NCBI GenBank assembly: GCA_029953675.1
Contig: JAMWBK010000003.1
Coordinates: forward strand, 62,001 to 126,000
DNA: 64,000 nt
Direction: 5' to 3'
Origin: Rhodosorus marinus CCMP1338
Lineage: Eukaryota > Plantae > Rhodophyta
The notes under the pieces are model-generated. The model was not told the origin of the DNA and did no database searches. It worked only from the letters and a program-made list of their open reading frames with translations. This document shows positions 1 through 28,195 of this stretch, piece by piece (position 1 is the stretch's first letter; the number at the start of each line of letters is the position of its first letter). Made by a program: the position numbers and the translations under genes.

Positions 1-930
1 CCACGTGACCAAAGCTTTCCACAATGAAAGGCTGGAACCGGTGGGAGCGTCCCTCAGCGCGAGGCAGACTGGCCATACTCTCAGCATACCGTCGTTCTTT
101 CACTCGGCGAAGGGTCGAAGCAGCTGCTCCCCGGCGGCGAGCGGCGGCCGTGAAATGGGCGCTTGCTACAGGGCATGTAATCGCGAGGTCAACATAAACT
201 GAGCGTCTGGCGGCAGCGTCGGAGACAAGGAGATCTGCGATACAGCGCGGCGGTGCCCTATCCGAGAACGATCTGGGTAGTTCCGTATGCCCTACCCGAG
301 TCAAACATTCGCTGAGGATGTACTCGAAGCGAGTGTGACGCCTCGTACGAAGACCTCTCAACAGTCCACTTGAACCTAAGAAATGGTAACCACAAGCATA
401 GATCCGACTCCCACATCCCCGACAGAAAGACGGCCGATTAGAGTGCCACGGAGCTTGTGGCAAACCCAGATAGATCCGTGCAGCAGAGCGGAACTGAAAG
501 GCATCCAGACGGTGACCCAGTGACAAAGGCAACCTGGTTAACCACAAGTGCGACAGGTTGTCTCCCATGCCTCGGAGGCGAGCGGCTGCGGTAGGCGGTG
601 TGAGGGAAGGGTTGAGCAAGATTGCGTGAGCGGCACTGTGTTGGCCTCAGGTGAGGCTATGTTGAATCACATCAGTGCGCGAGCTCCACAATCGGCTCAG
701 ACCTGGGTGATCGGCAACCGGTGACCCGGGGCTGGCTTCCCCCTCGTCGGCAAGCACTCTGTCGATGGGAGAGTCCGCGATCGCCTCAGTTCGTCCCCAT
801 AAGAGTTCCTTCTAGCAGCGAAATCGGGATCGGCTCTCGTCCGGCACGGGGTTGTACTTACTGAACGCCTGTTGCAGAGCATCATAGATGCTCGTCCGCT
901 TTGGCTGCCATCCACGAGCCCCAATGTGGT
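1..930 (-). mobile_element. CRE-like non-LTR retrotransposon family 1 (subfamily 1B), rearranged fragment running off the window start
   Basis: High nucleotide similarity to 2560-3490 (endonuclease and CCHC region). At about 894-930 a piece from the RT thumb region is joined on. Confidence 0.85.
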
Positions 931-971
931 GGAAGGCTTACGCCGTTTAAGTGTCTCTCTGTGGCGATATT

Positions 972-1038
972 CTGGGCTGTACTGGGCTTTACTGGCTTTA
1001 CTGGCTTTACTGGGCTTTACTGGACTGGACTTTACTAG
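972..1038. repeat. Degenerate 9-10 bp tandem tract CTGG(G/A)CTTTA at the 3' terminus of a family 1 element
   Basis: Read directly: CTGGGCTGTA CTGGGCTTTA CTGGCTTTA CTGGCTTTA CTGGGCTTTA CTGGA CTGGACTTTA CTAG. Confidence 0.95.
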
Positions 1039-2357
1039 CATAGCCTGAAGCGCTACGCAAGGCGTGAAGATGAACTAATAACTAGGGAGGGAAGTATGCA
1101 ACCCCAGGCGCCGATGGCGCCTCGGAAAGCATGTCGCTGGAATATCGCCAAAGGGAGACACTTAAACGCCTCAAGAGCGCCAAATATTCAGAAGGATGCT
1201 CAGCAAAACATTTCCGCAACCACTCTAAACCCGACTTATCGACGTGACCAAAGCTTTCCACAATGAATGGCTGGAACCGGTGAGAGCGACCCTCAGCGCA
1301 AGGCAGACTGGCCATGCTCTCAGCATACCGTCGTTCCTTAACTCTTCGAAGGGCTGAAGCCGCGGCCCCCCGGCGGCGGGCGGCTGCGGTGAGGTGGGCG
1401 CTGGCCACGGGGCAGGTAATCGCAAGGTCCACATATGTTGAGCGTCTGGCAGCAGCGTCGGAGACGAGGAGATCGGCTATACAACGGGGCGGTGCAGAGT
1501 CCGAGATTGATCTGGGCAGTTCCGACTCAACCTCAACCGTATGCCCTATCCGAGTCAAATATTCGCTGAGGATGTACTTGAGGCGAGTGTGACGCCTCGT
1601 ACGGAGACCTCGCAACAGTCCGCAGGAACCCAGGAAGTGGTAGCCACAAGCGTCAATCCGGCTCTCACATCCCTGACAGAAAGACGGCCGATTAGAGTGC
1701 CACGGAGCCTGTGGCAAACCGAGATAGATCCGTGCGGCAGAACGGAACTGGAAAGCATCGAGACGATGACTCAATGACGACGGTAGAGTGGTTAACCACA
1801 AGTGCGAGAGGTGGCCTCCCATGCCGCGGAGACGAGCGGCAGTGGTAGGCGGCGTGAGAGGAGAATTGAGCATGACTGTGTGAGCGGCACTGTGTTGGCC
1901 CCAGGTGAGGCTATGTTGAATCACATCAGTGCGGGAGCTCCACAATCGGCTCAAACCCGGGTAGTCTGCAACAGGTGACCCGGGGCTAGCCTCTCCGTCA
2001 TCGGCAAGAACTCGGTCGAGGGGAGAATCCTCAATCGCTTCAGCTCGTCCCCATAACAGCTCCCTCCAGGAACTAAAGCGGGACCGATTTGCGTCCGGCA
2101 CGGCGTTGTACCTCCTGAACGCGTGTTGAAGACCATCATAAATTGTCAAAAGCGGGGGCGGCAGGGTCACTGGATCCTCGTTGGTCAAAGCTCGAGCCAA
2201 GAGGAAGGCACTTCGCATCTGGAAGGTCACCAACGTTCGCAGCGCGGTAGCCCAGGAGGCAACCGCCGCTGGCGAGCATACCAGCCCACGGTCTGCGACG
2301 CCGAATCCCCCTAATCGCAACGGTAGAGCGATCTGTGCACGGATAAAGTCCCTGTCG
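1025..2357 (-). mobile_element. Family 1A retrotransposon, 5'-truncated copy A
   Basis: Near-identical to 8626-9956. It stops at ...CCTGTCG (2357), where the 3' end of copy B begins. Confidence 0.9.
1082..2320 (-). pseudogene. ORF2 C-terminal part (RT thumb, CCHC knuckle, RLE endonuclease), truncated
   Basis: LGGFGVAD; CQGCESRIDACGYHFLGSC; RHTRLK...IADLLV...VDLAITCP...KERRY...FQPFIVESFG. A 2-nt deletion near the C-terminus alters the last residues. Confidence 0.85.
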
Positions 2358-2402
2358 CTTTACTAGCATAGCCTGAAACGCTACGCAAACCGTGAAAAAG
2401 AA

Positions 2403-5400
2403 CTAAGAACTAGGTAGGGAAGCGTGCAAATCCAGGCGCCAATGGCGCGCCTCGGCAAGCATGCTGCTCGAATATCGCCACAGAGAGACACTTAAACGTC
2501 GCAAAAGTACCAAGTATTCAACAGGATCCTCAGTGAAACATTTCCGCAACCACTCTAAACCCGACTTCTCCACGTGAGCAAAGCTTTCCACAATGAAAGG
2601 CTGGAACCGGTGGGAGCGACCCTCAGCGCGAGGCAGACTGGCCATACTCTCAGCATACCGTCGTTCTTTCACTCGGCGAAGGGCCGAAGCAGCTGCTCCC
2701 CGGCGGCGAACGGCGGCCGTGAGATGGGCGCTTGCCATAGGGCATGTAATCGCGAGGTCAACATTAACTGAGCGTCTGGCGGCAGCATCGGAGACAAGGA
2801 GATCTGCGATACAGCGCGGCGGTGCCCTATCCGAGAACGATCTGGGTAGTTCCGATTCCACCTCAACCGTATGCCCTACCCGAGTCAAACATTCGCTGAG
2901 GATGTGCTTGAAGCGAGTGTGACGCCTCGTACGAAGACCTCTCAACAGCCCGCATGAACCTAAGAAATGGTAACCACAAGCATCGATCCGACTCTCACAT
3001 CCCTGACAGAAGGACGGCCGATTAGAGTGCCACGGGGCTTGTGGCAAACCCAGGTAAATCCGTGGGGCGGTGCGAAACTGGAACGCATCCAGACGGTGAC
3101 CCAGTGAACCCAGTGATGACGGCAGGGTCGTTAACCACAAATGTGATAGATGGCCTCCCATGCCGCGAAGGCGAGCGGCGGTGGTAGGCGGTGTGAGGGG
3201 AGAGTTGAGCAAGACTGCGTGAGCGGCCCTGTGTTGGCCCCAGGTGAGGCTATGTTGAATCACATCAGTGCGCGAGCTCCAAAATCGGCTCAGACCCGGG
3301 TAATCGGCAACCGGTGAACCGGGGCTAGCTTCCCCCTCGTCGGCGAGTACTCTGTCGATGGGAGAGTCCTCGATCGCCTCAGTTCGTCCCCATAACAGCT
3401 CCTTCCAGGAGCGAAATATGGATCGGCTCTCGTCCGGCACGGCTTTGCACTTACTGAACGCCTGTTGCAGAGCATCATAGATACTCAAAAGCGGTGGCGG
3501 AAGGGTCACGGGCTCTTCGTTGGTCAGTGCTCTGGCCAAAAGACAGGCACTCCGCATCCGAAGAGTCACCAGGGTACGGAGCGCGGTAGCCCAGGAGGCG
3601 ACCGCCGCAGGCGAGCTGACGAGGCCCGATCTGCGACGCCAAACCCCCATAATCGCAATGGGAGAGCGAGCTTGGCACGAATGAGGTCCCTGTCCGGAGC
3701 AGCTTCAAGATCGAGGGGTTCATCCACTAGCGTGCCCCAGTGGTGCAGCGTCGTCTCGTCGGCCTTGGCGGCGATCCATGAACCCCAGGCGGGGGGTAGG
3801 CTACGCAACCAGTAGTTGAGTCGGGGACCGGCGCAAAAGCGGGAAAGCAAGCAGGCCGATTGCAGCATGCTGTCTGGAAGGCGTTCAATGGCGTCAGTGA
3901 GCCGCTTGTGCCGAGCCAAAACGCGTTCGCAAGAGGATTGGACGAAGGTCTTGCTCCCTAAACCGACGCCGTGGTGCTCGAACCCTTCACAGTCGCCAAT
4001 AATTCGTAGATTAGATGGCATAGAGGCCATCGAAGCTTCACTCGGAGCGAGAAAACGACACTTTTCTGGTTCCACCGTCAGACCTACTCCACATCCAATT
4101 GCTTCGATCTGGGTCAACCCCCGAGCTAGGTTTTCAGGGTCGCCCAGCAAAGTCACGTCGTCGTGATAGGCGTAGATACGAAGAGCCGGCACCTCATTCG
4201 CGATACGCCGGAGAACGAGCTGCAGGGCACAGGCATGAATTAGAGGCCCGCATGGATCGCCTTGTTGGACTCCAGTATGTGCTTCGAAAATAGTGCCCTC
4301 TCTGGTCCAGTAGGGGAGGCTCCCCCTTCCGTAAAGACCAGAGAGAAATGGCCACGCCTCCGGAAAAACCCGTCGGATCACCTCCAACGCATGCGTCCGC
4401 GAGATGCTGTTGAATGCGTTCCGAAAATCAACCACCAAAACTCCCCACTCCGGCCTACAGGCACGCTCCAGCTCGATCCCATGGGTGATCAATTCGCAAC
4501 CACCGGAAAATCCCACCCCCACTTGCAAGGGCGCCATAAAAGCTGTGACCCGCTGGCGAAGGCGCTGGCACGGCCACCTTCCGGCCAACTTCCGTAGGCT
4601 CTCGACCATACCGATCGGGCCGGAGACGCGTGGGGGCCGGCTGATGGTCAGGCTTCGTGAGCAGGCAAAGCTGTGCCCGGCGGAGGTGTTCCCAGGGAGC
4701 AGACGCACCCGACGTGCCCTGGAACAGTTTGTTCAGAATCTTGAGCAGCGCGCTCTGGCCATCTTTGCCCAAGGCCTGCAATAGTTCGGTGCGGAGCCCT
4801 GAGGGTCTAGGGCAGCGTCCACACAGCGAGGTACGAAGCAACTCCTCTAGGTCAGACTCGTTGAGTGTAAGGTCGATTTGAAACCGGGCCAACTCCGGAC
4901 GGTCCAAGAATGCCTCAAACTCGGGTAGCAAGTCCAAGTCGGACGAGGGGAACAGAGACGACACCGTCGGGGCAAGACTTTCTTCGTAGGGGAGGACAGG
5001 CGCCTGGCCCTCCAGGACCCGTGCCGCTCGACTCAAGTTGCCCACTGCTACCAATTTCTGTACTCGAGCCGTCAGGGGCAGGACGTTTCCAGCCCGAGTC
5101 GGACGAACGGATGGGTCCAACGACGCCAAGTAGCTTTGCTGCAACACCTCGAACTCCCTTTTCAGGAACATCGCCAGCCGATCTCGGACACGCCATCTGC
5201 GCTCCCGCGTGTGTGTTGGGGCCAGAAGCAGGCGCGACATGACCCCCAGAAATTCCCAGATGACGGTGTCCCGGGAGGTTACGTGCCAGGCTCGTGAAAA
5301 TGAAGTCCAGGATAGTCCCAGAGCGAGGTAAGACGACAGACGGAATTCTGCCACGCAGGGGAAGCAAGCCTCCTTCCAAAGACATCCAACGCCGAAGCCA

Positions 5401-5469
5401 ACTTCGTAAACGCGTACGCCAAATACCCCAGTCTCCGCGCTCCTTCACGACATAGGACTGCAAATCCAT
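2403..5469 (-). pseudogene. ORF2 RT-RLE of copy B, frameshifted
   Basis: Split over ORF-track frames 4915..5469, 4455..5354, 3566..4708 and 2403..3650. Contains LRPIG, VDFRNAFNS, GVQQGDPCGP and AYHDD. Confidence 0.9.
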
Positions 5470-5500
5470 CGGCTGCGATCTCGCAGCCGTGCCCGGGGAG

Positions 5501-6875
5501 CTAATCGTGCTTCTCCCCCTTAGACCCGGGGGGAGTCGGTTCTCGCACGTTTTCCGCCTAACCTCACCAAAGTGGTAAGGCGCCCACTCCGCGAGGCTCG
5601 CGGGATAGCTCCCGCGGGCTTCAGCAAAGTAGTAGGGGTGTCCTCCACCGACATGCCCTCACTCTGCTCCCCTTCCTCACCACTCTCACTGGAAGTGGTG
5701 TTGGAAGCAGAGCCCTCTAATACCCCTAACCTCTGTAACTCCCGCCTGTGACTCGACGTCAACACAAGGCACCTCTCCCGGTCGAAAAGGGTAGAGACGG
5801 CGGCACGCAGGTGGCGTGGCCCCGACGCGAAGCGCTCCAAACGGATGAGCTCAATGCGGTGAAGGCGTAGCCAATGGATGGCTGCGGCTTTCACGCTGGC
5901 TTCGCGCTGAGAGAGTCTTGCCATTTCTCCGGGAGACAGGAAGGTGCCCGAGAAACGGTCAAAATCAAAGTGCAGAACGACCTGGGGATGAGACCGCAAC
6001 CAGCGGGCACTCTCAGGCCATTGCTCGGTAGGCTTGGCCAGTAGGGCCTGTAGGTACGTGGCCGCTGTTGTAGTTACCACGAAAAGGACATCCCGGCCCT
6101 CGTAGTTTGCAAAGATGAAGTCGTTGCGGCTACACCCCAAAGACTATGCAAATGTATTCCGAAAATCGCGCATGGACGGGACCTGGCCCCGTGTAGTCTG
6201 GGGCCGGACGTTGCGCACCCAGAGGAATTGCAAAGTAGGCGCTTCAGGTCCGCCCTGCTGCTCGCGAGAGGGCAAAAATCTTAGCATAGCCGCCGTCCTT
6301 GCGCCTGTGGTACCCTTCCGCAAAGCTGAGACGTAAGACGGGCCCCCCTTGGGACCACCTCGTGCCCCCGCCTTGGCCTGGAGCTGTCGCCCACCTGAGG
6401 GCTGGCCCAGGACGGGAAATTCCGCTCCTGCTGAGGGAACATTCGAAGGAGTAGAGATAGCCACACCCCTCTCCAAAGAGGCGCCAGCAGAGGGACCACG
6501 AACAGCGGGCTCGGCAGCCCGCGCCTGTTCTGAGGCAGTCGCAGAATGACTGACCCCTTGATTTTGACTGCCTAAGGGCCGCGTAGGCAACGTGGCCACC
6601 GTGTTCGATTTTAGAGCATGCGCCAGGAGGCTGGATTCCAGCAAACCAAGCCGTTGAGTCAGCTGCGGCAGGACGCGCTTGTCCCCCGCGGCGGTGATTA
6701 GGCTGATTACGGCTGACATCAGAGCTCGTACTTCCGTACCAGTTGCGCCCTGCAGCTCCACCTGCGTAGAGAACTGGCCCGAACTTAGACACACCCGGTG
6801 CCCGACCCCCAAGGATACCTCGTTGCCTGGGAGCTCCGCTCCCGAGGGAGCAGGGCGCGGGGAAACCCCTACCAT
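5501..6875 (-). pseudogene. ORF1 of copy B with an in-frame TAG at 6144-6146
   Basis: Homologous to ORF1 at 11776..13185. TFA*SLG here versus TFAESLG in copy D. One extra G near 5530 alters the C-terminus. Confidence 0.8.
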
Positions 6876-7137
6876 CACCAAAGAATGGAGTGACGATACT
6901 GTTACCACCAATTCCCCCTCCGAAAACACGCACCAGCCAACTCCACAGGAGAAAATTCCCCGTCACGACCCGACAGCCAGAACGCGAATGACCCGACTAC
7001 CAACCACGAAACCCGATAAAACGGGGGAAAAGGCAGCAGAGAGAAGCGCCTCCCACCGAAGAAACCACTTGCTACGCAAAACCACCGAAACCTAGAACCA
7101 GACACCCTCCAACAACTACACAAGCTTTCCTTGGCTT

Positions 7138-7840
7138 TACTGGGTCACCGTCTGGATGATTTCCAGTTTCGCTCCGCTGCACGGATTTTACCTGGATTTC
7201 CCACAAGCTCCGTGGCACTCTAATTGACCGTCTTTCTGTCAGGAGTGTGAGAGTCGGATCGATGCTTGTGGTTACCGTTTCTTAGGTTCATGTGGACTGT
7301 TGATAGGTCTTCGTACGAGACGTTACAGCTTCAAGTACATCCTCAGCGAAAGTCTGACTCGGGTGGGGCATACGGTTGAGGCGGAATCGGAACTACCAAG
7401 ATCGGTCTCGGATAAGGCACCGCCCCGCTGTATCGCAGGTCTCCTCGTCTCCGATGCTGCCGCCAGACGCTCAGCATATGTTGACCTCGCGATTACATGC
7501 CCTGTGGGAAGCGCTCATCTTATGGCTGCCGCCCGCCGCCGGGGAGCAGCTGCTTTGGCCATTCGCCGAGTGAAAGAACGACTGAGAGTATGGCCAGTCT
7601 GCCTCGCGCTGATGTCGCTCCCACCGGTGCCAGCCTTCCATTGTGGAAAGCTTTGGTCACGTGGAGAAGTCAGATTTGGAGTGGTTGCGGAAACGTTTCA
7701 CTGAGCATGCTGGTGAATACTTTGGCGATATTCCAGCGACATGCTTTCCGAGGCGCGCCATCGGCGCCTGGGGTTGCATGCTTCCCTCCCTAGTTATTAG
7801 TTCATCTTCACGCCTTGCGCAGCGCTTCAGGCTATGCTAG
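7138..7840 (+). mobile_element. Family 1 5'-truncated copy C, opposite orientation, frameshifted
   Basis: CCHC and RLE region, then a 1A-type 3'UTR ending GCTATGCTAGTAAAGTCCAG. Confidence 0.85.
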
Positions 7841-8576
7841 TAAAGTCCAGTTGAATACTTGGAACTTCCCTACCTAGTTCGTAGCGCTTTAGTCTATGCT
7901 AATGAGGATCTGAAAGATCAAACCGGGAATTGCGCGGAGCAACAGAATGAGATTCGCCGTACTTTAATGGCTAGAAAACCGATGTAGCAGGAGAGAACTT
8001 CAAAAGTCTCCAGGATTTTTGATAGATGAGGCTGGACAAGGTTGATCCACTTACTAGTGGATAGAGGGTACGCACGCAATTCCATAGCGCAATTCCACTG
8101 GAGCAGGCTAAGGATGAAATCTGCTCCATCGTTAATCATCTGAGGGTCCATCTGACCGAGCAGATCCGTCAATGAAGATCTGGCCGAGTAACTAAAGGAT
8201 TCTCGAGACGATCAGTCTTGCACTTCGTAGAACCATACTCTGATAGAGCGGACTGGAGAGAGACTGGTAACTAGACGAAATATAGGGTCCTTCAGCGACA
8301 TCCTTCAAACCAGACAAAAAAACTACCTTTGCTTAGCTATACGTCCCGGATATGCCCGGCCAAAGTCCATAGCTGGGCGATCCGGCTCTATTGATTAAGA
8401 CGAACGGTGTTTTCGCTTCACGCCCGTCGATGAGGTACTCGTACCAATCGCTTGAACATCTTTCCAGTGTCTTTGGATTGTTGACCCTGTGTCCACTCTG
8501 CTCTGGCCCTAACTTTGGCAGTATGCCAAGTTCTTTCGGCACTGCTCGAGTGCCACATGGCACTAATCCCTTTCAT

Positions 8577-8635
8577 CTGGACTTTACTGGACTTTACTAC
8601 GCTACGCAACTAGCATAGCCTGAAGACTTTACTAG
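8577..8635. repeat. Tail repeats (CTGGACTTTA x2) plus stacked tiny 3'-end fragments
   Basis: CTGGACTTTA CTGGACTTTA CTAC GCTACGCAAC TAGCATAGCCTGAAG ACTTTACTAG. Confidence 0.85.
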
Positions 8636-8671
8636 CATAGCCTGAAGCGCTACGCAAGGCGTGAAGATGAA

Positions 8672-11600
8672 CTAATAACTAGGGAGGGAAGCATGCAACC
8701 CCAGGCGCCGATGGCGCGCCTCGGAAAGCATGTCGCTGGAATATCGCCAAAGGGAGACACTTAAACGCCTCAAGAGCGCCAAATATTCAGAAGGATGCTC
8801 AGCAAAACATTTCCGCAACCACTCTAAACCCGACTTATCGACGTGACCAAAGCTTTCCACAATGAATGGCTGGAACCGGTGAGAGCGACCCTCAGCGCAA
8901 GGCAGACTGGCCATGCTCTCAGCATACCGTCGTTCCTTAACTCTTCGAAGGGCTGAAGCCGCGGCCCCCCGGCGGCGGGCGGCTGCGGTGAGGTGGGCGC
9001 TGGCCACGGGGCAGGTAATCGCAAGGTCCACAGATGTTGAGCGTCTGGCAGCAGCGTCGGAGACGAGGAGATCGGCTATACAACGGGACGGTGCAGAGTC
9101 CGAGATTGATCTGGGCAGTTCCGACTCAACCTCAACCGTATGCCCTATCCGAGTCAAATATTCGCTGAGGATGTACTTGAGGCGAGTGTGACGCCTCGTA
9201 CGGAGACCTCGCAACAGTCCGCAGGAACCCAGGAAGTGGTAGCCACAAGCGTCAATCCGGCTCTCACATCCCTGACAGAAAGACGGCCGATTAGAGTGCC
9301 ACGCAGCCTGTGGCAAACCGAGATAGATCCGTGCGGCAGAACGGAACTGGAAAGCATCGAGACGATGACTCAATGACGACGGTAGAGTGGTTAACCACAA
9401 GTGCGAGAGGTGGCCTCCCATGCCGCGGAGACGAGCGGCAGTGGTAGGCGGCGTGAGAGGAGAATTGAGCATGACTGTGTGAGCGGCACTGTGTTGGCCC
9501 CAGGTGAGGCTATGTTGAATCACATCAGCGCGGGAGCTCCACAATCGGCTCAAACCCGGGTAGTCTGCAACAGGTGACCCGGGGCTAGCCTCTCCGTCAT
9601 CGGCAAGAACTCGGTCGAGGGGACAATCCTCAATCGCTTCAGCTCGTCCCCATAACAGCTCCCTCCAGGAACGAAAGCGGGACCGATTTGCGTCCGGCAC
9701 GGCGTTGCACCTCCTGAACGCGTGTTGAAGACCATCATAAATTGTCAAAAGCGGGGGCGGCAGGGTCACTGGATCCTCGTTGGTCAAAGCTCGAGCCAAG
9801 AGGCAGGCACTTCGCATCTGGAAGGTCACCAACGTTCGCAGCGCGGTAGCCCAGGAGGCAACCGCCGCTGGCGAGCATACCAGCCCACGGTCTGCGACGC
9901 CGAATCCCCCTAATCGCAACGGTAGAGCGATCTGTGCACGAATAAAGTCCCTGTCGGGAGCAGCTTCAAGATCGAGGGGCTCATCCAAGAGCGTTCCCCA
10001 GTGTTGCAGGGTCATTTCGTCGGCTTTAGCCGCGATCCACGAGCCCCAAGCTGGAGGCAGGCTGCGCAACCAGTAGTTGAGTCTGGGACCGGCACAAAAG
10101 CGGGAAAGCAAGCAGGCCGATTGCAGCATGCTGTCGGGTAGGTGCTCAATGGCGTCGGTGAGTTGCTTGTGCCGTGCCAAAACTCGCTCGCAGGATGCTT
10201 GGACAAAGTTGTCAGTCCCCAATCCGACGCCGTGGTGTTCGAACCCTTCACGTTCGCTGATTAGTCGCAGAGTGGGTGGCAGAGAGTTCAGCGACACGTC
10301 CCTCGCGGGGAGAAAGCGACATTTTTCTGTTTCCACAGTCAAACCGACGCGACGTGCAATCGCTTCGATCGCGGTCAGTCCCCTAGCCAGGGTGTCAGGG
10401 GTGCCCAGCAATGTTACGTCATCGTGGTACGCGCAGATTCGAAGATCCGAGACCTCAGTCGAAAGACGTAAAAGTACGAGCTGTAGGGCACAGGCATGAA
10501 GAAGAGGTCCGCAAGGGTCGCCTTGTTGGACGCCAGTATGTGCTTGAAAAACAGTGCCCTCCGTTGTCAAGTAGGGGAGGCTCTCCCCTCCGTAAATACC
10601 CGATAGAAGCGGCCACGCCTCCGGAAACACACGTCGGAGCACCTCTAGCGCATGCGTCCGCGACACGCTGTTGAATGCGTTCCGGAAATCAACCACCAAG
10701 ACTCCCCACTCCGGCCTACTGGCGCGTTCTAGCTCGATCCCATGGGTGATCAGTTCGCAACCCCCCAGAAAATCCCACCCCTACTTGCAAGGGCGCCATA
10801 AAAGCTGTGACGCGCTGGCGAAGGCGCTGGCATAGCCACCTCCCGGCTAACTTCCGTAGGCTCTCCACCATCCCGATCGGCCGGAGACGCGGGTGGGCCG
10901 GCTGCTGGTCAGGTTTCGTGAGCAAGCAAAGCTGTGCCTGCCGGAGATGTTCCCATGGCGCGGACGCACCCGATACGCCCTGGAACAACTTGTTAAGGAT
11001 CCTCAGAAGCGCGCTCTTGCCAGGCTGGCTCAGGGCCTGCAATAGCTCTGTTCTTAGTCCGGAGGGTCCGGGACAGCATCCCCGACGCGAGGTACGAAGC
11101 AAATCCTCCAGGTCAGACTCACTGAGCGTCAGATCGATGCGAAACCTGGCCAACTCCGGACGGTCCAAGAATACCTCGAATTCAGGGGACAAATCCACGT
11201 CGGACTCAGGGAACAAAGACGACACCGTCTGGGCGAGACTATCATCGTAGGGGAGGACAGGCGCCTGGCCCTCCAAAACCCGCGCCGCTCGACTTAAATC
11301 GCCCACTGCTACCAATTTCTGTACTCGAGCTGGCACGGGCGACACTGTGCCATGCCGGGTCCGACGGGCGGATGGTGCTGACGACGCCAAATAGCTGCGC
11401 TGTAGGACTTCAAAGTCTCCCTTCAAGAACAGGGCCAGTCGGTCTCGTACTCGCCATCTGCGCTCCGATGTGTGAATGGGGGCCAGAATCAGGCGCGGCA
11501 TGACCCCCAGAAAAACCCAAATGACTGTGTCCCGAATGTTGCGAGCCCGGCTCGTGAAGATGAAATCGAGAATGGTTCCAGCTACTAGAAGGTCTCCACG

Positions 11601-11744
11601 AGGAAGGACGACTGGGGGAATGCCCCCACGGAGGGGAAGCGAGCCTCCTTCCAAAGAAATCCACCGCCGGAGCCAACTCCGAAAACGCGTACGCCAAATG
11701 CCCCAGTCTCCGCCCTCCTTCAGGACATAAGACTGTAGATCCAT
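8672..11744 (-). CDS. ORF2: reverse transcriptase + CCHC + restriction-like endonuclease (~1023 aa if one G in the G6 run at 10761-10766 is removed)
   Basis: ATG at 11744. GCCPGPSGLR, LRPIGMVE, VDFRNAFNSV, GVQQGDPCGP, AYHDD, LGGFG, CCHC, RH, D-D-K, PFIVESFG. Span is 3073 nt = 1024 codons + 1. Confidence 0.88.
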
Positions 11745-11775
11745 AGGCTGCGACCTCGCAGCCGTGCCTGGAGCG

Positions 11776-13185
11776 CTAATCGTGCTTCTCCCCCTTAGAC
11801 CCGGGGGAGTCGGTCCTCGCTCTCTTACCTCCTATCCGCACCAAAGTCGTGAGCCGCCCACTCCGCGAGGCTCGCGGAACGGATCCCGCGGGCTTCAGCA
11901 AAGTAGCCTGGGCGTCCTCCACCGCCATGCCCTCAGTCTGCTCCCCTGCCTCACCACTCTCGCTGGAAGTAGTGCTGGAAGCAGAGCCCTCCAAAATCCC
12001 CACCCGCTGCAGCTCTGTCTTGTAGCGCGAAGTCAGCACAAGTCGCCTCTCCAGATCGAAGAAACTGGAAACCGCCATGCGCAGGTGACGAGGGCCCGAC
12101 CGGAACCGCTCCAACAAGATCCTCTCAAGGCGCTGAATCCGTAGCCAATGGATCGCTGCCGCCTTCACGCTGCTCTCATGCTCAGAGAGCCCTGCCGTTT
12201 CTCCCGGAGACAGGAAATTGCCCGAGAAACGGTCAAAATCCAAGTGCAAAACCACCTGCGGGTTGCCGCGCAGCCACCGGGCGCTCTCAGGCCACTGCTC
12301 GGTAGGCTTCGCCAGCAAGGCCTCCAGGTACTTGGCGGCGGTTGCGGAGACCAAAAACAGCACATCGCGACCCTCATAGTTTGCGAAGAAGAAATCACCC
12401 CGGCTGCACCCCAACGATTCCGCAAAAGTGTCCCGGAAGTCTCGCATAGACGGAACCTGTCCTCGTGTAGTCTGGGGCCGGACATTTCGCACCCACAGAA
12501 ATAGGAGAGTGGTCTCCACAGGTCCATCCTGAGGCTCGCGAGATGGTATGAAACTGAGCATAGCCGCCGTACGTGTGGCAGTGGTGCCCTTCCGCAAGAC
12601 TGATGCGTACGAAGCGCCCCCCTTGCGGCCACCACGTGCCCCCGAAGTAGCCGGGAGTTGGTGACCACCTGAGGGCTGGTCCAAGAGAGGGAAGTCCACA
12701 GCTGCAGTCTCCTCCACACCGGTTGCCGCACAGTCACCACCACCATTGCCTCGAGTCCCCGAGCGCTGAAGCGCGTTTTGGCCCGGCCTGCCGCTCCCCA
12801 ACGTCGTACTGTCCCGCGCAGAAGCAACAGCCCTCGCCTGTCCCGGGACAGGTTCATGTTGATTGACCGGATGTTGACTGCCTTCAGCCAACGCTGCCAC
12901 TCTGGGGCAATTCAAATTCTCGTCCGAATTTAAATTTGACCTGGCCAGCAATCCCGATTCCAGCCCACCTAGCTTCTGGGTGAGCTGAGGGAGCACTCCA
13001 CGATCACTCGCAGCCGTGATCAGGCTGGTGACAGCGGAGATAAGTGCACGCGCCTGGGTGCCAGAAGCGCCTTCCAAGTCAACCTCGGAAGAAAAGGTGC
13101 CGCAGCTGAGGCGAACACGGAGTCCCCCACCTGGCAGTGCCTCCTTGGGAGGAGGCTCCGTCGAGCGCGGAGATATCCCTACCAT
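11776..13185 (-). CDS. ORF1 (~469 aa) with conserved N-terminal domain and RRM-like core
   Basis: Open frame. ATG at 13185 (MVGISP) matches the MVGVSP starts of copy B and family 2. The upstream TTG extension in the ORF track is probably 5'UTR. Confidence 0.8.
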   Translation of the reverse strand: MVGISPRSTEPPPKEALPGGGLRVRLSCGTFSSEVDLEGASGTQARALISAVTSLITAASDRGVLPQLTQKLGGLESGLLARSNLNSDENLNCPRVAALAEGSQHPVNQHEPVPGQARAVASARDSTTLGSGRPGQNALQRSGTRGNGGGDCAATGVEETAAVDFPLLDQPSGGHQLPATSGARGGRKGGASYASVLRKGTTATRTAAMLSFIPSREPQDGPVETTLLFLWVRNVRPQTTRGQVPSMRDFRDTFAESLGCSRGDFFFANYEGRDVLFLVSATAAKYLEALLAKPTEQWPESARWLRGNPQVVLHLDFDRFSGNFLSPGETAGLSEHESSVKAAAIHWLRIQRLERILLERFRSGPRHLRMAVSSFFDLERRLVLTSRYKTELQRVGILEGSASSTTSSESGEAGEQTEGMAVEDAQATLLKPAGSVPRASRSGRLTTLVRIGGKRARTDSPGSKGEKHD

Positions 13186-13704
13186 CCTGAGGGAATCCGC
13201 AAAGGAAACGTTGCACCACCAATATGAAACCGCACCGAGAGAATAATCGACCAAACCCAACCCAAATAGGAAAGGCCCCGCAACACACCCACCCAGAAGA
13301 CAGAAGTAGTTGCAAATGCAAACGACGCCCCGCGGAAAATCGAGGGGAAGGCGTACCAGAGGAAGCGCTTCCCGTAAACGAACACGCTCGCGACCGAAAA
13401 AGAAACAAAACCCCAATCCTCGACAACAACTCAGCTAGACTGTTAAGCTAACATGGCAAACTACTTCTCAGTAACCCCCCCCATCCCTTTCATCGGCGAG
13501 TTGGTTTTGCAAGCAGGAAACGGACGAGGAGGTGTGGAAGTTTAGCTTTTGTTTTTTTCAATCGGAACCTCAACATGCGGTAGTTCATCTCTTCTCAAAT
13601 GTGCTTCTTCTCCTCGCGACGATTCTCTGGGTGAAGTTGCAGCTTTTCGTAAGGCTCAATCGGACGAGATGCTGGCGCGTCGGAGAGGCGGTGCTGACGT
13701 CGAG

Positions 13705-14168
13705 CGTCTGGATGCCTTCCAGTTTCGCTCCGCCGCACGGACTTACCTGGGTTTGCCACAAGCTCCGTGGCACTCTAATCGGCCGTCTTTTTCTGTCAGG
13801 GATGTGAGAGTCGGATCGATCCTTGTGTTTACCATTTCTTAGGTTCATGCGGACTGTTGAGAGGAACCGTCCCGCCCCTGACGGCTCGAGTACAGAAATT
13901 GGTAGCAGTGGGCAACTTGAGTCGAGCGGCACGGGTCCTGGAGGGCCAGGCGCCTGTCCTCCCCTACGAAGAAAGTCTTGCCCCGACGGTGTCGTCTCTG
14001 TTCCCCTCGTCCGACTTGGACTTGCTACCCGAGTTTGAGGCATTCTTGGACCGTCCGGAGTTGGCCCGGTTTCAAATCGACCTTACACTCAACGAGTCTG
14101 ACCTAGAGGAGTTGCTTCGTACCTCGCTGTGTGGACGCTGCCCTAGACCCTCAGGGCTCCGCACCGAA
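13705..14168 (+). mobile_element. Scrambled family 1B fragment: CCHC region (13705-13864) fused to an upstream ORF2 segment (13864-14168)
   Basis: The second part matches the reverse complement of ~4790-5090. The same antisense peptide MPQTRVASPSRTRG... appears at both loci in the ORF track. Confidence 0.85.
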
Positions 14169-14221
14169 ATATTTTACGCCACTCACACTCATTATTCTAC
14201 GGTTGTCCCATCGGCAGGAAA

Positions 14222-14249
14222 CTGGAATTTATTGGACTGGACTTTACTA
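14222..14249. repeat. Solo family 1A tail motif with no element body
   Basis: CTGGAATTTA TTGGA CTGGACTTTA CTA; the part TGGACTGGACTTTACTA is identical to 1021-1037. Confidence 0.6.
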
Positions 14250-15400: not shown

Positions 15401-15515
15401 AGCAAGTACTCTAACGAACGCCAAACGTAGCCTCGAACTACAATTGACGGATCTCATTCAACCCTAGCATAGTGCTTATCCTCTATGGAACCGATATTAT
15501 CTTCCCCTACGGAAT

Positions 15516-15700
15516 GAATCTGTTTAATCGGAGACTGAAAGAAAAACCGCCCAGCAGGAAAAAAAGAATATTAAACCGCGAAGATCGCGTGCCTCCAATA
15601 TCAAGGCAGCGCTCAGACGCCACAGCAAGAGACTTTTAAACTGGTAAACAACGAGGACAGGCGGTCACGGCGTTCGCGGAACAATTCCCGAACTGCGGGT
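15516..15700 (-). mobile_element. Degenerate family 2-like 3' end
   Basis: Minus strand encodes LLLWRLSAALILEARDLR, followed by a T-rich UTR and TCAGTCTCCGATTAAAC. Confidence 0.75.
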
Positions 15701-16226
15701 AAGTTTGCTACCACTGTGGTGTGACCAACATTTAGAAACCTAAACTGCTTCTAGATTGGACAATATTCTTAATATTATTAGAAAGAATCTGCATCTCCGC
15801 CTGTCAATCTGTTGGAATTTTCGAGGATTCCCAACCTTGACCAAAGTCCCGTCAGCCAAACTTCGATAGTTTCCTTATTGTTTCCCTGACCATTGGGGTC
15901 GGTGTCTCGCACTTCGGTAACCTACTATACTGTGGTGATAGTCGATGGCTTGTACCGTTCGGAATTGGATGCAAAGATCAGTTTTTGGTTTCGTGAGGGT
16001 GTATGGTGCTGGCTTTTGGTGGTTTTGAGTCGCAATTGTGTTCTTCGGTGGGAGGCGCTTCTTTCTGCAGCCTTTCCCCCGCATCTTCTAGTGGTGTGGT
16101 GCGTGCTGGGGGTTGCTAGCGCCCCTTGGAGGTCGTGGTGGTTTTTCTTTGGTTGCAAACGTTGGGAACAAGTTCTCTTTTTGGGGGTTTCGTTGGGGAA
16201 TCGGTTTTTCACACCTTCCAATCGTT

Positions 16227-17513
16227 ATGGTTGGGGTTTCCCCACCCATTCCGGCGGACGGAGCCGTTCTCTCAGCGCGCGTGGAGCTCAGCGTGGGCGG
16301 GTTTAGTACCGCGGCCACCCTCACGGACTGCGCTGACGAGTTAGCCCATGGGATCTGCTCGAAACTGACGAGTCTTCTTGTGACTGCTTCCCAGGAACAC
16401 CGCCTGCCCCTGCTGATCGCCTATTTGGAGCGCTTCTCCGCCTCCGCGCCTGCCCCATACCCCCGGTGCCCGTCCCCGCGGATCCGCACGGTACAGCGGG
16501 GCCTGCCTCCACCCGACCCGAGCGCTCCGCTCCGGTCATTCCTGATTCCGACTGGCCTACCCCTATTCAAGGACAGACGCCTCCTGGGCCCGCGTCGGGC
16601 CCGAATCCTGCTCCCTCCAGTGCCCCACGTGCGACCTATTCGCAGGTCCTGCGCAGGGGCTCTTCTGAACAACGCACGACGGCAATGGTGCGTATGATGC
16701 CACAACACATCCCTATTGACTCTTCTCGCCAACTATCTCCGTTCCACTTTGTTTGGATGACGAACGTGCGTCCCCAGACCCCCTCTCGTGGTCGGGGCCG
16801 CGCGCCCGTCCACTACCGCGATTTTCGCGACACCATGGCTTCCTCCCTTGGGGTCGCCCCGTCTGAATTCCTATATGTGGACTTCACGGGCCCTCATGCC
16901 TGTTTTCTTGTTACTGACTCGGCTTACCAGTTCCTTCAATCGCTTGTAACCACCCCCGCGCCCCAGCGCTCTGCTCTGGCCAACATGATACTGACTCGTC
17001 CTCATGTCTCTTTGTTTGTCGAGTTCGATCGTTTTGACGCCGGCTGGGGCCTTGCAAAACCTGGATGCCTCGCAGGCTTCGGTTGTCGCGCTACACACTC
17101 ATGCGGCGCGGCTCTCGCGCGTACAGGCGAGCCTCTTCGCGCGTTTTCCTCCTCGCGGGGTCCTCGGCACCGCGCTAGAGGCCTTCCTCTCCACTGAGGC
17201 CACCCTGCTGGAAGCCCACCCTGCGTTTGACCTTCTGCCGCCGACTCCTGAGCACCCTTCCTCCCCTCGCCCTGTCTCCGAGGCTCGTGACACCGACATG
17301 CCAGAAGCACCATCGGCCTCTCCGAATCCGCTGGCTCTGGACACCCTCAGTCAAGACTCCGCTGCTGAAAACCCTGTGTCTACTTTCTTCAGGTCTTTTA
17401 GTTCCTTCGTGCGCCCCCCACGTAAGCGTCGTGCGGCTCCTGAGCCTCCCTCCGAGGCACCTCCTCCGGATATTCGATCTGCCTTCCCGACTGAGGGGAG
17501 GCCCGATGTCTGA
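16227..17513 (+). pseudogene. Family 2 ORF1 (RRM-like core), frameshifted
   Basis: Spans frames 16113..16697, 16466..17197 and 17004..17513. Contains FHFVWMTNVRPQT...YRDFRDTMASSLG...EFLYVDF...HACFLV. Confidence 0.8.
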
Positions 17514-20500
17514 GTCTTCCTCCTCCGCGTGCGTGTCGTCCCGGCTACCCCTGTTTACCAGTGACCGCTCAGCCTGGCATGAGCGTGTTATCTCGTGGTT
17601 TTCGCACCTTGTCGCCTCCTACCCGGACGGTTCTCTTCCCCTTTGTCGTCAGAGCACGGCCGTACGGCTCCCTCGTCGACTTCATAAGCCCCTAGGATTG
17701 GTGTTGGATTTCTCTGGCAGCAGGTCGCCGCGAACCCTCACTGCTCTCTTCGCTGGGAACTCTTGTTCTTTTTTCCCCGCCTCGTGCTCACCTCCTCTAC
17801 CGTCCCCCTCAACCCACATCCTCGCCGGGTCCACCCTCGCCGAAACTGCAAATGTTCCTTTCCGGCGACTTTGAGGACCTCGAACGTCTTTATTTCGCTT
17901 CTCTCTCTTCCTTTTCTCCTAGTGCTCCCTCAGCTTTTAGGTCTTCTCGACAGAATCGGGCGCGTCACGCGGTGGTAAGCGGTGATCTGCGGCGGGCAGC
18001 CGGGATCCTCCAGCAGCGGCAACCTGTGGTTCCATACTCCGATGATCTTTCTTCACCGCTCCGTTTGCTCTTTCCCTCGGAAGGCTCCCCTTGGGACTCC
18101 TCGTTTGAATCAGTGTTGGAAGAGTACCGCGCCGCGCCACATCCCAGTGCGCGGTTAGTGGTCAATCTGGAGGCGGTGCGTCAGTTGGTTCATGATGCTC
18201 CGAAGGGCCGTTCCCCAGGGCCCTCGGGGCTGCGGGTGGAATATCTCCGTTTCTTAAGTGATGAAGGTTTGAAGGCGTTGGCGTGGGTGGTCGAAGCGCT
18301 TGTGAATGGTGATCCTCTGTGTGAGTGTGCGTGGTTCTTGGTCGGGCGTTCGCAGTTGTGTCTGCTTTCGAAGCCCGGCCACACGGCCTCGAGCCCTGCT
18401 ATTCGCCCTATTGGCCTGGTTGAGGTGGTCCGCAAATTGGCGGCGCGATGGTTAGTGAAAATCCTGGTTCCCGAATCCCGCCGTTTCTTTGGGCACGTGC
18501 AGTTAGGCGTGGGCTATCGTGGTGGCTGTGAGTTGTTGTCTGTTTTACTCCGTTCGGAAATGGCGTACTCCCCAGATTCTGGGCTCCTCTCTGTAGATTT
18601 TACCAATGCGTTCAACCGCGTCTCTCGTCCGGCTCTCATGCACGTGGTGCGCGAAGTCTTCCCTGTAGGCTTTCCCTTTGTTAGTAGACTTTATTCTCCG
18701 CTTGGTCGTGGGGCTACCTATGACACCCTTGGCGCTTCCTCACACACGTTTGCGGCGCGCACAGGGGTACAACAGGGTGATCCCTTGTCCCCTTTCCTAC
18801 ATGCCTGTGGACTACAACTCGTCTTGCTTTGTCTTCGCTCCGAATTCCCGCAGGTTCGTACGGTTGCATACCACGACGACGTGTGCCTCCTGTGCCCCCT
18901 GATACTCTAGCGCTCGCTTATGATCGTCTCCGCTCCTTGGCTTCGCGGGGGGACTTGGAAGTTAATCATCACGAATCGTTCTACTGGGGAGGTGTAGCTG
19001 CACAAGAGCAGCAGGTACCTGCGTCGTTCCAGGATATTTGGAGACCGGATGGTTTTGTCCACTTAGGCATCCCCTACGGGTCGCCGTCCTTCGTTGAAGG
19101 CGAGTTGCTGCAGCTCCTCGGTAAGCACAGACAGCTGGTTGCAGAGCTTCGACGGCTCCCTCCGGGCTTTCTCCAGTGCGCGTTGTTGCTGTTTCGGTAT
19201 TGTTGCAGTCAGCGGTTAACCTATTGGCTTCGCTCACTTCCAACTCATTGGGGCCGGTGGTTGGCCACTCGTGCGGATGCTGAAAGTTTCCGTGACCTGG
19301 GGTATTTTCTCGATGAAGAGCTGAGCGCTCTGCCGCGACCCACCTGTGATGTTGTGCGCGCCCAGGTAGGCCTCCCATTGCGATTGGGGGGACTGGGCCT
19401 CTGCAATCGTGTTGTGGTCCAACCTGCAGCCGCAGTAGGGGCCTGGGGAACCGCACTTCCCACTTTGAGCAGCTTGGGTATCTCGAAGTTCCGCAATTTG
19501 ATGGCGAGCCTCTCGCGGGGTGTCTTGCTTCCCAGCGTACCGGAAAGCGCCCAAGACTTGTTTCTGGAGCTCCAAACCGCCCTGAATTCCTGTACTAGTC
19601 TCCCCGAAACCGTTCAACCCCGTCTTCCTGACTGGCGAGCTGTATTTGACCGCTCTCGAGGCTCCGCCCCGCCGGGATTCGTCCTGCGCCTGAACCTGTT
19701 CTAGGGGAGATTGACCCAGTGGTTGCCGCAGAAGGAGAAGTTCCAGTTGATCCTCCTGATAATTCCCAGCGCGCTGGGAGCCGAGCTCAAGCACGCACGG
19801 ATGCGCTGCAAAACATCCTTTCTTGGGACTTGCACCGTGCTGCATATGGCCGAGTCCTCGCGCAGATGGTCTCATCTTCTCGCGCCCGCGCCCGCCTACA
19901 TAGTCTTGGAGGGGTTATTAGCTCTCAGTGGCTCATGACCGTACCAGCCTTTCCGCCACTCACACTGTCGGATTTCGAAGTGCGTACTTCACTGCGCTTA
20001 TACCTCGGCTTACATCAGCCCCCTTGGCCGTACGAGATGGGTTCGTCGTGCCCTCTCTGCTCTCAGACTGACGACAACGCAGATTTTGGCGCCCACCTGC
20101 TCGCTAGTTGCCCGGCGGTGAAAGGTGCTCGAACCCGCCGCCATACACGGATCTTGAACCTGTTATACCGGGAACTTCGGCCTATAGTCCGGCAAGCCGG
20201 TCTGGAAATCGAACGTGAGAAACCTTTACCCGTCGCGGACTTTCAAAATGATGAACGCCGTGTAGCCGACCTGGTGATCACCTGTGACGACAGCCGCCGT
20301 ACCACATACGTTGATCTTGCTGTTCCTAACCCTCAAGCTAGTCGTTATCTCCCGGCTGCGGGGGAGCGCCGTGGATCTGCCGCCGCCAGCATGAGACGCC
20401 GCAAAGAGATCAAATACGCGGGGGCTTTGTCTTCCCCTGGTGTTCGTGCTTCGGCACTAGCACATCGCTTGATACCCCTGATCATTGAGTGCTTTGGGTT

Positions 20501-20648
20501 CATGGACTCTGTTGGTTCTCGCTGGCTTCGGGAGTTGTTCCGCGAACGCCCTGACCGTCTTCAATCGTTGTTTACCCGCTTAAGTTTCCTGCTGTGGCGC
20601 ATGAATGCCGCTTTGATGTTGGAGGCGCGAGTACTTCGCCGCGCTTAG
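17506..20648 (+). pseudogene. Family 2 ORF2 RT-RLE, frameshifted
   Basis: ATG at 17506 overlaps the ORF1 stop. GRSPGPSGLR, IRPIG, VDFTNAFNRV, GVQQGDPLSP, AYHDD, CPLC...H...C, RH, VADLV, VDLAV, KEIKY, PLIIECFG. Confidence 0.9.
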
Positions 20649-20975
20649 TCTTTTTTTCCCCTCGCGGTTTTTTTTTTTCAGCCTCCGATTAAACCATTCG
20701 TTCGTACCGTTCAAACTATTTCAAACGTTTAAACAGGTTTTTCTACCGTATACCGTTCGCACATCGGTCCCACCGTATGTATGACGATGTGCGAATCATC
20801 CTTCTACATGCTGAGAGCGTATATTCACCGCTGACCGCTGACCGCGTAACCGTTCCAACACAATCTGTTGGAAGTCCACATGTGATCTAGGCACCCCGTA
20901 CTGGTCTAGGTCATATGTTAGAACCAATTACTCCTATATCTAGTACCGATGCACAGAGTGGTCTAGCAATGGTAT

Positions 20976-21099: not shown

Positions 21100-21497
21100 T
21101 ATATATGATGCTAAGCCGCTCTGTGCTAAGCCACTCTGTGCTCGGAGGGGTGGCTCGAGAAAAAGGGTACGGTGTATGCGCCTGGACGGGTCCCTATAGC
21201 TCTGGAAGAACTTCCAGTTTCAGCAGGTTATGAGCCCAGAGCGCTAACAGAGCTATAAGAACTTCCAGTTTCAACGTAATCCTCTGTGTTCTGGTTGCGA
21301 GTTCACAGAAAGTCGGAGGGTACGTGAGAAAGGGCCTATCAATTTATCCTTCCGCTGTTAGCAGACTCCAGCCAAACCTTTTGTTTCCTGCTCATATGAT
21401 TTATAGAGAGCGGACCGATTTCTCCCATGGGTTTATTATGTTATACAAGTCCGTTCCAGAACTTGGAACGGACTTGAAACACTGATTCGTACCAGGC

Positions 21498-21816
21498 CAG
21501 ATGCCCCAGTCTCCGCTTTCCTTCAGGACATAAGACTGGCTTTACTAGCATAGCCTGAAACGCTACGCAAACCGTGAAAAGGAACTAGGTAGGGAAGCGT
21601 GCAAACCCAGGCGCCGATGGCGCGCCTCGGCAAGCATGCTGCTCGAATATCGCCACAGAGAGACACTTAAAGGCCGCAAAAGTTCCAAGTATTCAACAGG
21701 ATGCTCAGTGAAACACTACTAGCATAGCCTGAAACGCTACGCAAACCGTGAAAGGAACTAAGAACTAGGTAGGGAAGCGTGCAAACCCAGGCGCCGATGG
21801 CGCGCCTCGGCAAGCA
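21498..21816 (-). mobile_element. Stack of family 1 fragments: two 1B 3' ends (21535-21714, 21718-21816) and a ~40 bp piece from the ORF2 start (21498-21537)
   Basis: Matches the 3'UTR at 2358-2540 and the segment 11700-11735. Confidence 0.85.
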
Positions 21817-22162
21817 TTGGGACTACTACAATAAGACCATCCTCATTGTACAAGTCCGTTAGAGAAGTCGGTCCGCTCTGCTCGGCGGGCGACCCTTAGT
21901 TTATCTTGAAGAAGATTTCCTTTTCGTACTGAACCTCTAAATGAACGTTCGTGATTAAGGAGGTGGTTTGAACAGCATTGATAGCCAGGTATGAACAGTG
22001 TTTCAAGCACGCGATGTTTTCTCACCCAAGGCGACCCAGCTAGCAGACCTACCTCAGGCCTATTTGCGGTTCCAGGAATTATTGCCGTTCTTTTCTTCAA
22101 CGACACTTTTTCTTCAAAGATAGGTCCTTTTTTTTTCTTAGCAGATCAAACCAAGAGTTCTC

Positions 22163-27914: not shown

Positions 27915-28195
27915 ATAAGCGCAGTCGCGCATGTTAAGAACGTAGGCTTATGCTCTGCGCAAGACGTAAAAGGAAACTAGGGACTAGGGAGACGAGCATG
28001 TAAAATCCCAGGCGGCGGATGCGAGCCTCGGCGAGCATGTTGCTAGAATACCGCCATAGAGCAACAATTAAACGGCGCAGGAGCACCAGATATTCCTCAG
28101 GATGCTCGATAACTCCAGCCACTCCAAGCTTGATTTTTTGAGGTGCCCAAAGCTTTCCACAATGAAAGGCTGGAGCCTGTGAGACCGGCCCTGTC
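27915..28195 (-). mobile_element. 3' end of a third family 1-like subfamily
   Basis: EHPEEYLVLLRRLIVALWRYSSNMLAEARIRRLG and FQPFIVESFG coding sequence. Confidence 0.75.

Follow-up and report, generated by a model that had tools for sequence, protein, structure and literature searches.

A repeat-tailed, R2-like retrotransposon of the red alga Rhodosorus marinus and the possible use of its own tail arrays as landing sites

Introduction

There are precedents for the general idea that a retrotransposon whose tail resembles its target inserts into its own relatives. For Zepp-like long interspersed nuclear elements (LINEs) of the green algae Chlorella, Coccomyxa and Chlamydomonas, PMC8226300 (citing Higashiyama 1997) and PMC3446292 describe copies that insert into copies, giving clusters and tandem arrays that consist mostly of 5'-truncated 3' ends. 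In Alu self-insertion, which uses the L1 machinery, the A-rich tracts of older Alus are sense-orientation hotspots, and the element's own 3' repeat is like the priming or nicking site (PMC2836564). Here, we describe a LINE, termed family 1, in a 64-kb stretch of the Rhodosorus marinus CCMP1338 genome (bases 62001-126000 of the 3,353,001-bp scaffold JAMWBK010000003.1), which is referred to as the window and numbered from its first base. The assembly is GCA_029953675.1, an accession that PMC10250338 links to this species. Family 1 carries a 3' tail of short repeat units, and these tails look like a favoured but non-obligatory landing site for further copies.

Family 1 may resemble Zepp in its chains of copies (B->A->array->Z and F->E, a small sample), which template jumping could also have produced. 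However, Zepp is an L1-clade element with an apurinic/apyrimidinic (AP) endonuclease and a poly(A) tail, and forms one cluster per chromosome, whereas family 1 has a predicted R2-like endonuclease, a tail of 9-10-nt units and a red-algal host. As in Alu, the 3' repeat of family 1 may resemble a priming or nicking site and relatives may act as hotspots; Alu differs in being a non-autonomous mammalian element with a homopolymer tail and the TTTT/AA site of an AP endonuclease. R2 proteins have been described as jumping between templates and as giving snap-back 5' junctions and head-to-tail tandem copies (PMC11371274). In both R2 and family 1, the reverse transcriptase (RT) precedes a Cys/His motif and a restriction-like endonuclease (RLE), predicted in the case of family 1, but R2 hits one site in 28S ribosomal DNA and has an N-terminal zinc-finger/Myb region, neither of which was seen in the window. 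Sequence identity to R2 is low, and relatives of family 1 have a separate upstream open reading frame (ORF), as in L003.

Dong, which is found at (TAA)n, and Waldo, Mino, Kibi and Koshi are microsatellite-specific LINEs whose tail repeat is the same as the surrounding repeat. These elements target host microsatellites of 2-4 nt that are common. In contrast, the unit of family 1 is 9-10 nt long and found only beside element ends, and insertions outside repeats, with target-site duplications (TSDs), exist. Head-to-tail arrays built by successive retrotransposition are also a feature of telomeric elements (HeT-A/TART/TAHRE; TRAS/SART; Giardia GilM/GilT; MoTeR), but there it is the ends of chromosomes or telomere repeats that are lengthened. 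The window lies 62-126 kb inside its scaffold and showed no repeat of telomere type. Red algae are a lineage in which transposons have barely been described.

Repeat tails of family 1

LINE sequence from at least three families fills nearly all of the first ~37 kb of the window. All copy-level results on family 1 come from this single window and about eight copies, with copy C as the reference (Table 1). Alignment distinguishes two 3'-end subtypes. Subtype 1A comprises copies A and C together with the 3' 130 nt of 'D', and copies B, E and F form subtype 1B. The sense strand is the minus strand for most copies and the plus strand for 'D'. If the body of the element is taken to end in ...GGCTATGCTA, the tail parses as (GTAAAG[T/C/-]CCA)n. 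The decamer GTAAAGYCCA occurs seven times in the window (0.11 expected) and GTAAAGCCA four times (0.46 expected); all tail units together amount to ~150 nt of the 64 kb, well under 1% of the window. The tandem tract at 972-1023 has a period of 9/10 and 5.4 copies (Tandem Repeats Finder score 83). An initial annotation, made from the letters of the window, had set its proposal of a self-propagating array against independent host arrays of the repeat; none is present in the window, whose two arrays (972-1035 and 8578-8597) each lie next to a family 1 3' end.

Read in this way, all tails in the window reach their flank at the ...CCA phase. For five of them, those of the composite array, C, D-short, E and the divergent locus G, ~1e-4 is expected if the phase of a 9-10-nt unit is random. 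The tail of A ends at CCA as well (position 1021), but it was delimited through the 15-mer of locus G and is no independent case. In 5/6 cases G is the first flanking base after the tail, and most flanks open with G or GT. This phase-locked ...CCA/G junction offers a testable handle on how initiation is positioned along a repeat tail. Half-units of the form GTCCA are confined to T-type tails.

T-containing units adjoin all three 1A ends, and a T-less 9-nt unit adjoins the one tailed 1B end (E). All four tailed 1A/1B ends thus agree with the initial annotation, according to which the tail unit tracks the 3'-end subtype. Co-segregation is weakened by the numbers, as three ends versus one are not significant, and by locus G, whose divergent 3' end (14233-14247) bears a T-type tail too. 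Two of the reported units are also not full ones in the phase of the initial annotation: the full unit TCCAGTAAAG is not found at 7829-7840, where D-short has only GTAAAGTCCA(G) at 7840-7850, and instead of CCAGTAAAG after the element end at 21535, E has only GTAAAG+CCA(G) at 21537-21545.

The locus of copies B, A and Z

Copy B ends in ...GCTAGTAAAG / ...GGCTATGCTAGTAAAG (...GCTA GTAAAG, 2363->2358) and runs straight into the truncated 5' start of A at 2357, as the initial annotation had stated. Beyond A lies a tail tract of 63 nt (973-1035). Its first 15 nt, GTAAAGTCCAGTCCA (1035->1021), recur exactly at 14247->14233 (0 expected). In that second place, locus G, the 15-mer stands next to unrelated DNA, which delimits A's own tail to 15 nt. 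The units that follow at 1020->973 are C-type and 9-nt units without T, resembling the unit at the 1B end E. Since A's own tail is only 15 nt long, the sequence supports the view that the array at 973-1020 was already in place before A arrived. The GTAAAG found at either side of A is possibly a 6-bp TSD, with the first GTAAAG of the array as its 3' copy.

The other end of the array is occupied by a 36-nt inverted fragment, 94% identical to B sense positions 4642-4676, a segment that lies inside Z's own span. This fragment is joined to Z's truncated 5' end and looks like a snap-back 5' junction; the array is therefore the upstream flank of Z. On the far side of B, the tail-like CCCAGTAAAGCCA is ambiguous: it may be a remnant of a tail array or an altered form of the native antisense motif (CCCAGTGACAAAGGCAA) of 1B copies. 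Three junctions are found at one array, namely the 3' side of A, the 5' side of Z and, with this ambiguity, the 5' side of B. As Z and A/B cannot share one cDNA, the comparison supports at least two independent events that used one array of ~60 nt.

The initial annotation also proposed that A inserted into the tail of B and displaced the rest of it. The part of this proposal that concerns the array stands, in that the array appears to pre-date A; the B-then-A order is not supported, given the 99% identity of B to a fragment at 13863-14173, by which B need not be old. The argument that B is older than A because of its broken ORF was dropped for the same reason. Identities between copies are 94.6% for B and Z versus 99.4% for A and C. 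The possibility that D-old is a snap-back copy made along with B was rejected, as B is nearer to Z (94.6%) than to D-old (91.0%).

Insertions outside tails

Three insertions with TSDs lie outside tails: C (12 bp, GATGAAAGGGAT), D-short (9 bp, TGAATACTT) and the F/E cluster (7 bp, GTCTTAT). The exact 12-bp duplication delimits C as a full-length copy in non-element DNA; random pairs of windows had a 12-mer in common in 20/20000 trials (0.1%). TGAATACTT stands at 7714-7722 and 7852-7860, on both sides of D-short. With a 1B body up to 7719, 1A sequence from 7720 and this flanking duplication, the sequence identifies 'D' (7141-7905) as a composite, a young 1A copy nested inside an older 1B copy, and not as one copy. 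The switch from 1B to 1A at 7720 falls on a 31-nt gap. GTCTTAT brackets the mini-F-E cluster at 21530-21536 and 21831-21837.

The tail of C contains mini-copies of 16 nt and ~17 nt (GTAAAGTC / TTCAGGCTATGCTAGT / TGCGTAGCG^TAGTAAAG...) that are implausible as separate insertions. Thus, some head-to-tail mini-copies seem to fit better with template switching or re-initiation by the RT within one event. The stretch at 8598-8632 comprises two mini-copies of the last 16-25 nt of the element, one with a 13-nt internal skip; both resemble abortive starts or template switches in the course of a single integration.

Several observations weigh against tail arrays as a preferred target. For C, D-short and the F/E cluster, scores of the empty site against tail dimers are no better than random (p = 0.72, ~1 and 0.72, respectively), and the three targets defined by TSDs all differ, so family 1 has no single specific insertion sequence. 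Nested copies pile up in islands rich in transposable elements irrespective of targeting. At the locus of B, A and Z, CCCAGTAAAGCCA differs from the native antisense motif of 1B copies only by a 3-nt deletion and one substitution. Several orders of insertion of A, B and Z are compatible with the window, the informative 3' side of Z being off-window, and the frameshift in C, the near-identical relative of A, further weakens the argument for an older B. The B->A and F->E junctions could each result from one template-jumping event. Finally, the G/GT microhomology was noticed after the fact, and its bases can partly be assigned either to the tail or to the target. A tail-like target was rejected as a general rule; a high score was obtained for the native antisense motif of 1B copies alone.

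Alternative explanations and proposed mechanism

We consider it about an even chance that family 1 is an R2-like LINE with a repeat tail for which tail arrays are a favoured, non-obligatory landing site, with at least two events at 937-7144. The initial annotation's idea of self-targeting arrays is thereby partly supported: repeated use of one array stands on its side, and the insertions of C, D-short and F/E at non-tail sites stand against it. Instead, template jumping or re-initiation within single integration events, without any preference for tails, might have produced every head-to-tail junction (B->A, F->E and the mini-copies of C's tail), in which case the tract after A would be A's own error-prone tail. 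R2 proteins jump to further 3' untranslated region (UTR) RNAs and give head-to-tail tandem copies in cells (PMC11371274). The mini-copies of C, a like terminal duplication in a family 2 copy (35925-35960), the single GTCTTAT pair around the F/E cluster and the 99%-identical partner of B, which leaves A and B possibly of equal age, all agree with such a process. It accounts poorly for the tract after A, where the twin at 14233-14247 limits A's tail to 15 nt, hence the further units would be target DNA, or for Z, which, with its inverted 36-nt piece and upstream array, cannot join the same cDNA. Furthermore, the acceptor copies end in GT, GTA(G), GTAAAG or GTAAAGTC, never in the ...CCA of true 3' junctions, and A (1A) and B (1B) come from different subfamilies. 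Template jumping as the sole explanation thus seems unlikely to us.

Chance nesting, with near-random insertion into a transposon island and survival of copies in gene-poor DNA, would be in keeping with the almost complete LINE content of the first 37 kb (at least three families), with the unrelated sites, not tail-like when empty, at which C, D-short and the F/E cluster lie, and with a family 2 copy that begins 35 nt past the 3' end of another family. Yet tail units make up only ~150 nt of 64 kb and three junctions fall in one array, the F->E junction abuts at a 3' end as well, and nested copies share the orientation of their hosts; we regard this explanation as improbable. Least probable is a strict specificity for an independent host (CCAGTAAAG)n satellite, comparable to that of Dong for (TAA)n, with the 'tails' being host target DNA. 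RLE-type LINEs are usually site-specific, as in the R2, R4/Dong, NeSL and CRE groups, and lone CCAGTAAAG strings exist at 37104-37112 and 49926-49934. However, the window has no element-free arrays, C has an unrelated 12-bp TSD and yet two tail units that are missing from its 5' side, D-short and E likewise bear tails at unrelated sites, and the type of unit follows the 3'-end subtype of the element.

Under the favoured reading of tail arrays as a non-obligatory landing site, the RNA of family 1 would end in a 3' tail of 9-10-nt units, (GUAAAG[U/C/-]CCA)n, and integrate by target-primed reverse transcription with staggered nicks, giving TSDs of 6-12 bp. The nicked DNA end may pair with the GU that opens a unit, which would explain the CCA phase-lock; we infer this pairing from tails phase-locked at ...CCA and flanks that usually start with G or GT. 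Re-pairing on GU could add units by a telomerase-like slippage, resulting in variable unit numbers, and the second GU of a T-type unit would yield the GTCCA half-units. A tail array may be favoured as a landing site because it offers many perfect priming sites, while the endonuclease itself would be permissive. Z plus A and/or B would have used one array, building the head-to-tail chain B -> A -> array -> Z. Other family 1 insertions enter ordinary sequence, and some very short 3' tandem copies would arise via template switching or re-initiation within one event.

A stronger form of this proposal, a self-targeting RLE-type LINE in which the element-encoded decamer tail, extended by realignment on GU, is the preferred priming and possibly nicking site, is tentative and to us rather doubtful. 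If it were true, family 1 would build its own safe-harbour arrays without a host target gene. It would then represent in a red alga, with an R2-like element, what Zepp clusters are in green algae, and might have a chromosomal role. Should the pattern hold genome-wide, family 1 would stand as an R2-like LINE that creates the landing pad for its own copies and unites repeat tails, homology-assisted priming and self-nesting in one element. Family 1 is undescribed and its kind is known; the self-targeting habit is plausible but unproven.

Coding capacity and classification

The Pfam RVT_1 domain was detected in ORF pieces of B and C with E-values of 1e-11 to 1e-13 (1e-11 and 1.2e-13), and the solved structures closest to the family 1 protein are the R2 proteins 9nl3 and 9dou (PDB; E = 1.7e-9). 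C-terminal to the RT is the Cys/His motif CQGCESRIDACGYHFLGSC, followed by ...ADLLV...VDLAI...KERRY. A second, weak match of 9nl3/9dou covers this Cys/His region and the CCHC/RLE region of R2 (domain i-Evalue 2.2). The columns C, C, C, H, D, D, K and E are conserved in an alignment with three distant relatives (P0001, P0004 and P0007). A Cys/His motif plus PD-(D/E)xK RLE is thus weakly predicted for family 1, at motif level. At E <= 5, Pfam gave neither an AP endonuclease (Exo_endo_phos) nor any further domain for the ORF pieces of B and C, and the 546-aa N-terminal ORF has no Pfam domains, zinc-finger/Myb included. No rRNA, tRNA or small nuclear RNA target, and no other Rfam family, was found in the window with Rfam and ARAGORN. 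From these protein features, family 1 is best classified as a non-long-terminal-repeat retrotransposon, an R2-like (RLE-type) LINE, yet not a member of the R2 clade proper. A search with ARAGORN and Rfam for a tRNA-like 3' end behind the terminal CCA gave nothing, and this origin was rejected.

The nearest protein to the family 1 RT/RLE in a search of 5.8 billion sequences is 34% identical, and no R. marinus protein was among the returns of that search. The transposon ORFs of the window are missing from the called genes of the genome. A metagenome scan with the 3' 20-mer of family 1 gave one chance match, in a bacterial-looking contig. Among the relatives inspected, the distant L004 alone has a repeat tail, ending in ~220 nt of degenerate (TTGTA)n; L003 ends 39 nt past the stop, and L006 and L007 have no clear tail.

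The 5' UTR of B (7022-7109) shares 85% identity with the 5' region of a full-length family 2 copy (15995-16081), and the 5' regions of C and B are unrelated to each other. Together, these two observations suggest that 5' modules may have been exchanged between families 1 and 2.

Copies and fragments of family 1

Table 1. Copies, fragments, tails and junctions of family 1 in the window.
Feature	Position	Strand	Description
Copy Z	1-938	-	1B-type, 5'-truncated, ~277-nt internal deletion
Inverted 1B fragment	937-972	+	36 nt, antisense to Z, between Z 5' end and array
Tail array	973-1020	-	1020->973: GTAAAGCCCA, GTAAAGCCA, GTAAAGCCA, GTAAAGCCCA, GTACAGCCCA
A's own tail	1021-1035	-	T-type, 15 nt, GTAAAGTCCAGTCCA = GTAAAGTCCA GTCCA
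Copy A	1036-2357	-	1A-type, 5'-truncated, intact 412-aa ORF stretch
Copy B	2358-7131	-	1B-type, near full-length, ORF in at least 5 pieces
CCCAGTAAAGCCA	7132-7144	-	13 nt, tail-like, directly upstream of B 5' end
D-old	7141-7719 (left part); 7851-7905 (right part)	+	old 1B copy; right part degenerate
D-short	7720-7850	+	young 5'-truncated 1A copy, ~130 nt, with tail
Copy C	8578-13482	-	full-length 1A including compound tail; 4.9 kb; ORF pieces 546, 342 and 675 aa
TSD of C, GATGAAAGGGAT	8566-8577 (3'); 13483-13494 (5')	-	exact 12-mer
Compound tail of C	8578-8632	-	GTAAAGTC / TTCAGGCTATGCTAGT / TGCGTAGCG^TAGTAAAGTCCA GTAAAGTCCA
Locus G	14233-14247	-	GTAAAGTCCAGTCCA ending very divergent family-1-like 3' end; unrelated DNA follows
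Mini-F-E cluster	21537-21830	-	13-nt mini-piece (TGTAGTAGTCCCA), F, E, tail GTAAAGCCA
Copy E	21546-21715	-	1B, with tail
Copy F	21717-21817	-	1B; ends GCTAGTAG
Tail end, composite array	...CCA last base 973		next: 36-nt inverted fragment
Tail end, D-short	...CCA last base 7849		next: G, T, then TGAATACTT
Tail end, C	...CCA last base 8578		next: TSD GATGAAAGGGAT
Tail end, locus G	...CCA last base 14233		next: unrelated DNA
Tail end, E	...CCA last base 21537		next: GTCTTAT

The identity of Z to B is 94.6% over the 520 nt they have in common, and the 3' end of Z is ~216 nt to the left of the window start. The ~277 nt that Z lacks in comparison with C correspond to the stretch between C positions 9740 and 10016. 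Copy A is 99.1-99.4% identical to C and ~84-86% to B; D-old is 91.0% identical to B and 90.4% to Z, and D-short is 99.2% identical to C. Copy C carries the RT, the Cys/His motif and the predicted RLE. Locus G, very divergent, is similar to the family 1 3' region at z = 3.2-3.7.

Two plus-strand fragments, 13705-13864 and 13863-14173, follow one another in the wrong order, with the endonuclease region ahead of a pre-RT region. The second, of 311 nt (family 1 match 13873-14158), is the 99%-identical partner of B and corresponds to B 4780-5090. As both are without a 3' end, this pair is not the result of ordinary truncated insertions.

An inverted repeat, GAGCGGACCGAYTTCTC (21408-21424 and 21862-21878), surrounds the F/E cluster, and each side also has ACGGACTTGTA. 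Possibly the cluster is enclosed by a small foldback element. The same stretch contains 43 nt of the family 1 ORF, at 21496-21538 (-).

Exact CCAGTAAAG strings away from family 1 ends are found at 37104-37112 (+) and at 49926-49934 (-, within the GSDH gene, on the opposite strand). Including those at 7135 and 31885, there are four lone copies, against ~0.5 by a rough 9-mer estimate. The strings at 31885 and 56769 were rejected as family 1 3' ends, their similarity being weak or absent (z <= 2.5). The longer AGTAAAGYTTACGGTTACG occurs twice (31873-31891 and 56757-56775, both -; 0 expected) in unrelated surroundings, once at the 5' end of a full-length H element and once between two host genes.

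Other families, repeats and host genes

The family 2 LINE, which has an RT, is represented at 15990-20703 (+), 33313-35932 (+), 27039-27907 (-) and 15512-15692 (-). Its tail differs from that of family 1 and consists of ...AAACCATTC followed by (RTTC)n. In the copy that ends near 35932, the terminal ~15 nt (TAAACCATTCATTCAT...) are repeated directly one after the other. A third family, H (27943-31884), is the one whose 3' end lies 35 nt ahead of the start of the copy at 27907->27039. A nested tandem repeat at 32033-33280, with periods of 27, 108, 135 and 485 bp, lies between the 5' end of H and a family 2 copy, and a 97-bp unit is repeated 4.1 times at 22163-22558 (98% identity).

The transposon island stops near 37 kb. 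The host gene at 49534-50871 agrees exactly with a gene called in assembly GCA_029953675.1. Host genes called in the assembly at 43996-58571 encode DnaJ, GSDH (49534-50871), a 227-aa ORF, a Cys/Met pyridoxal phosphate (PLP) enzyme and a thioredoxin-like 2Fe-2S protein.

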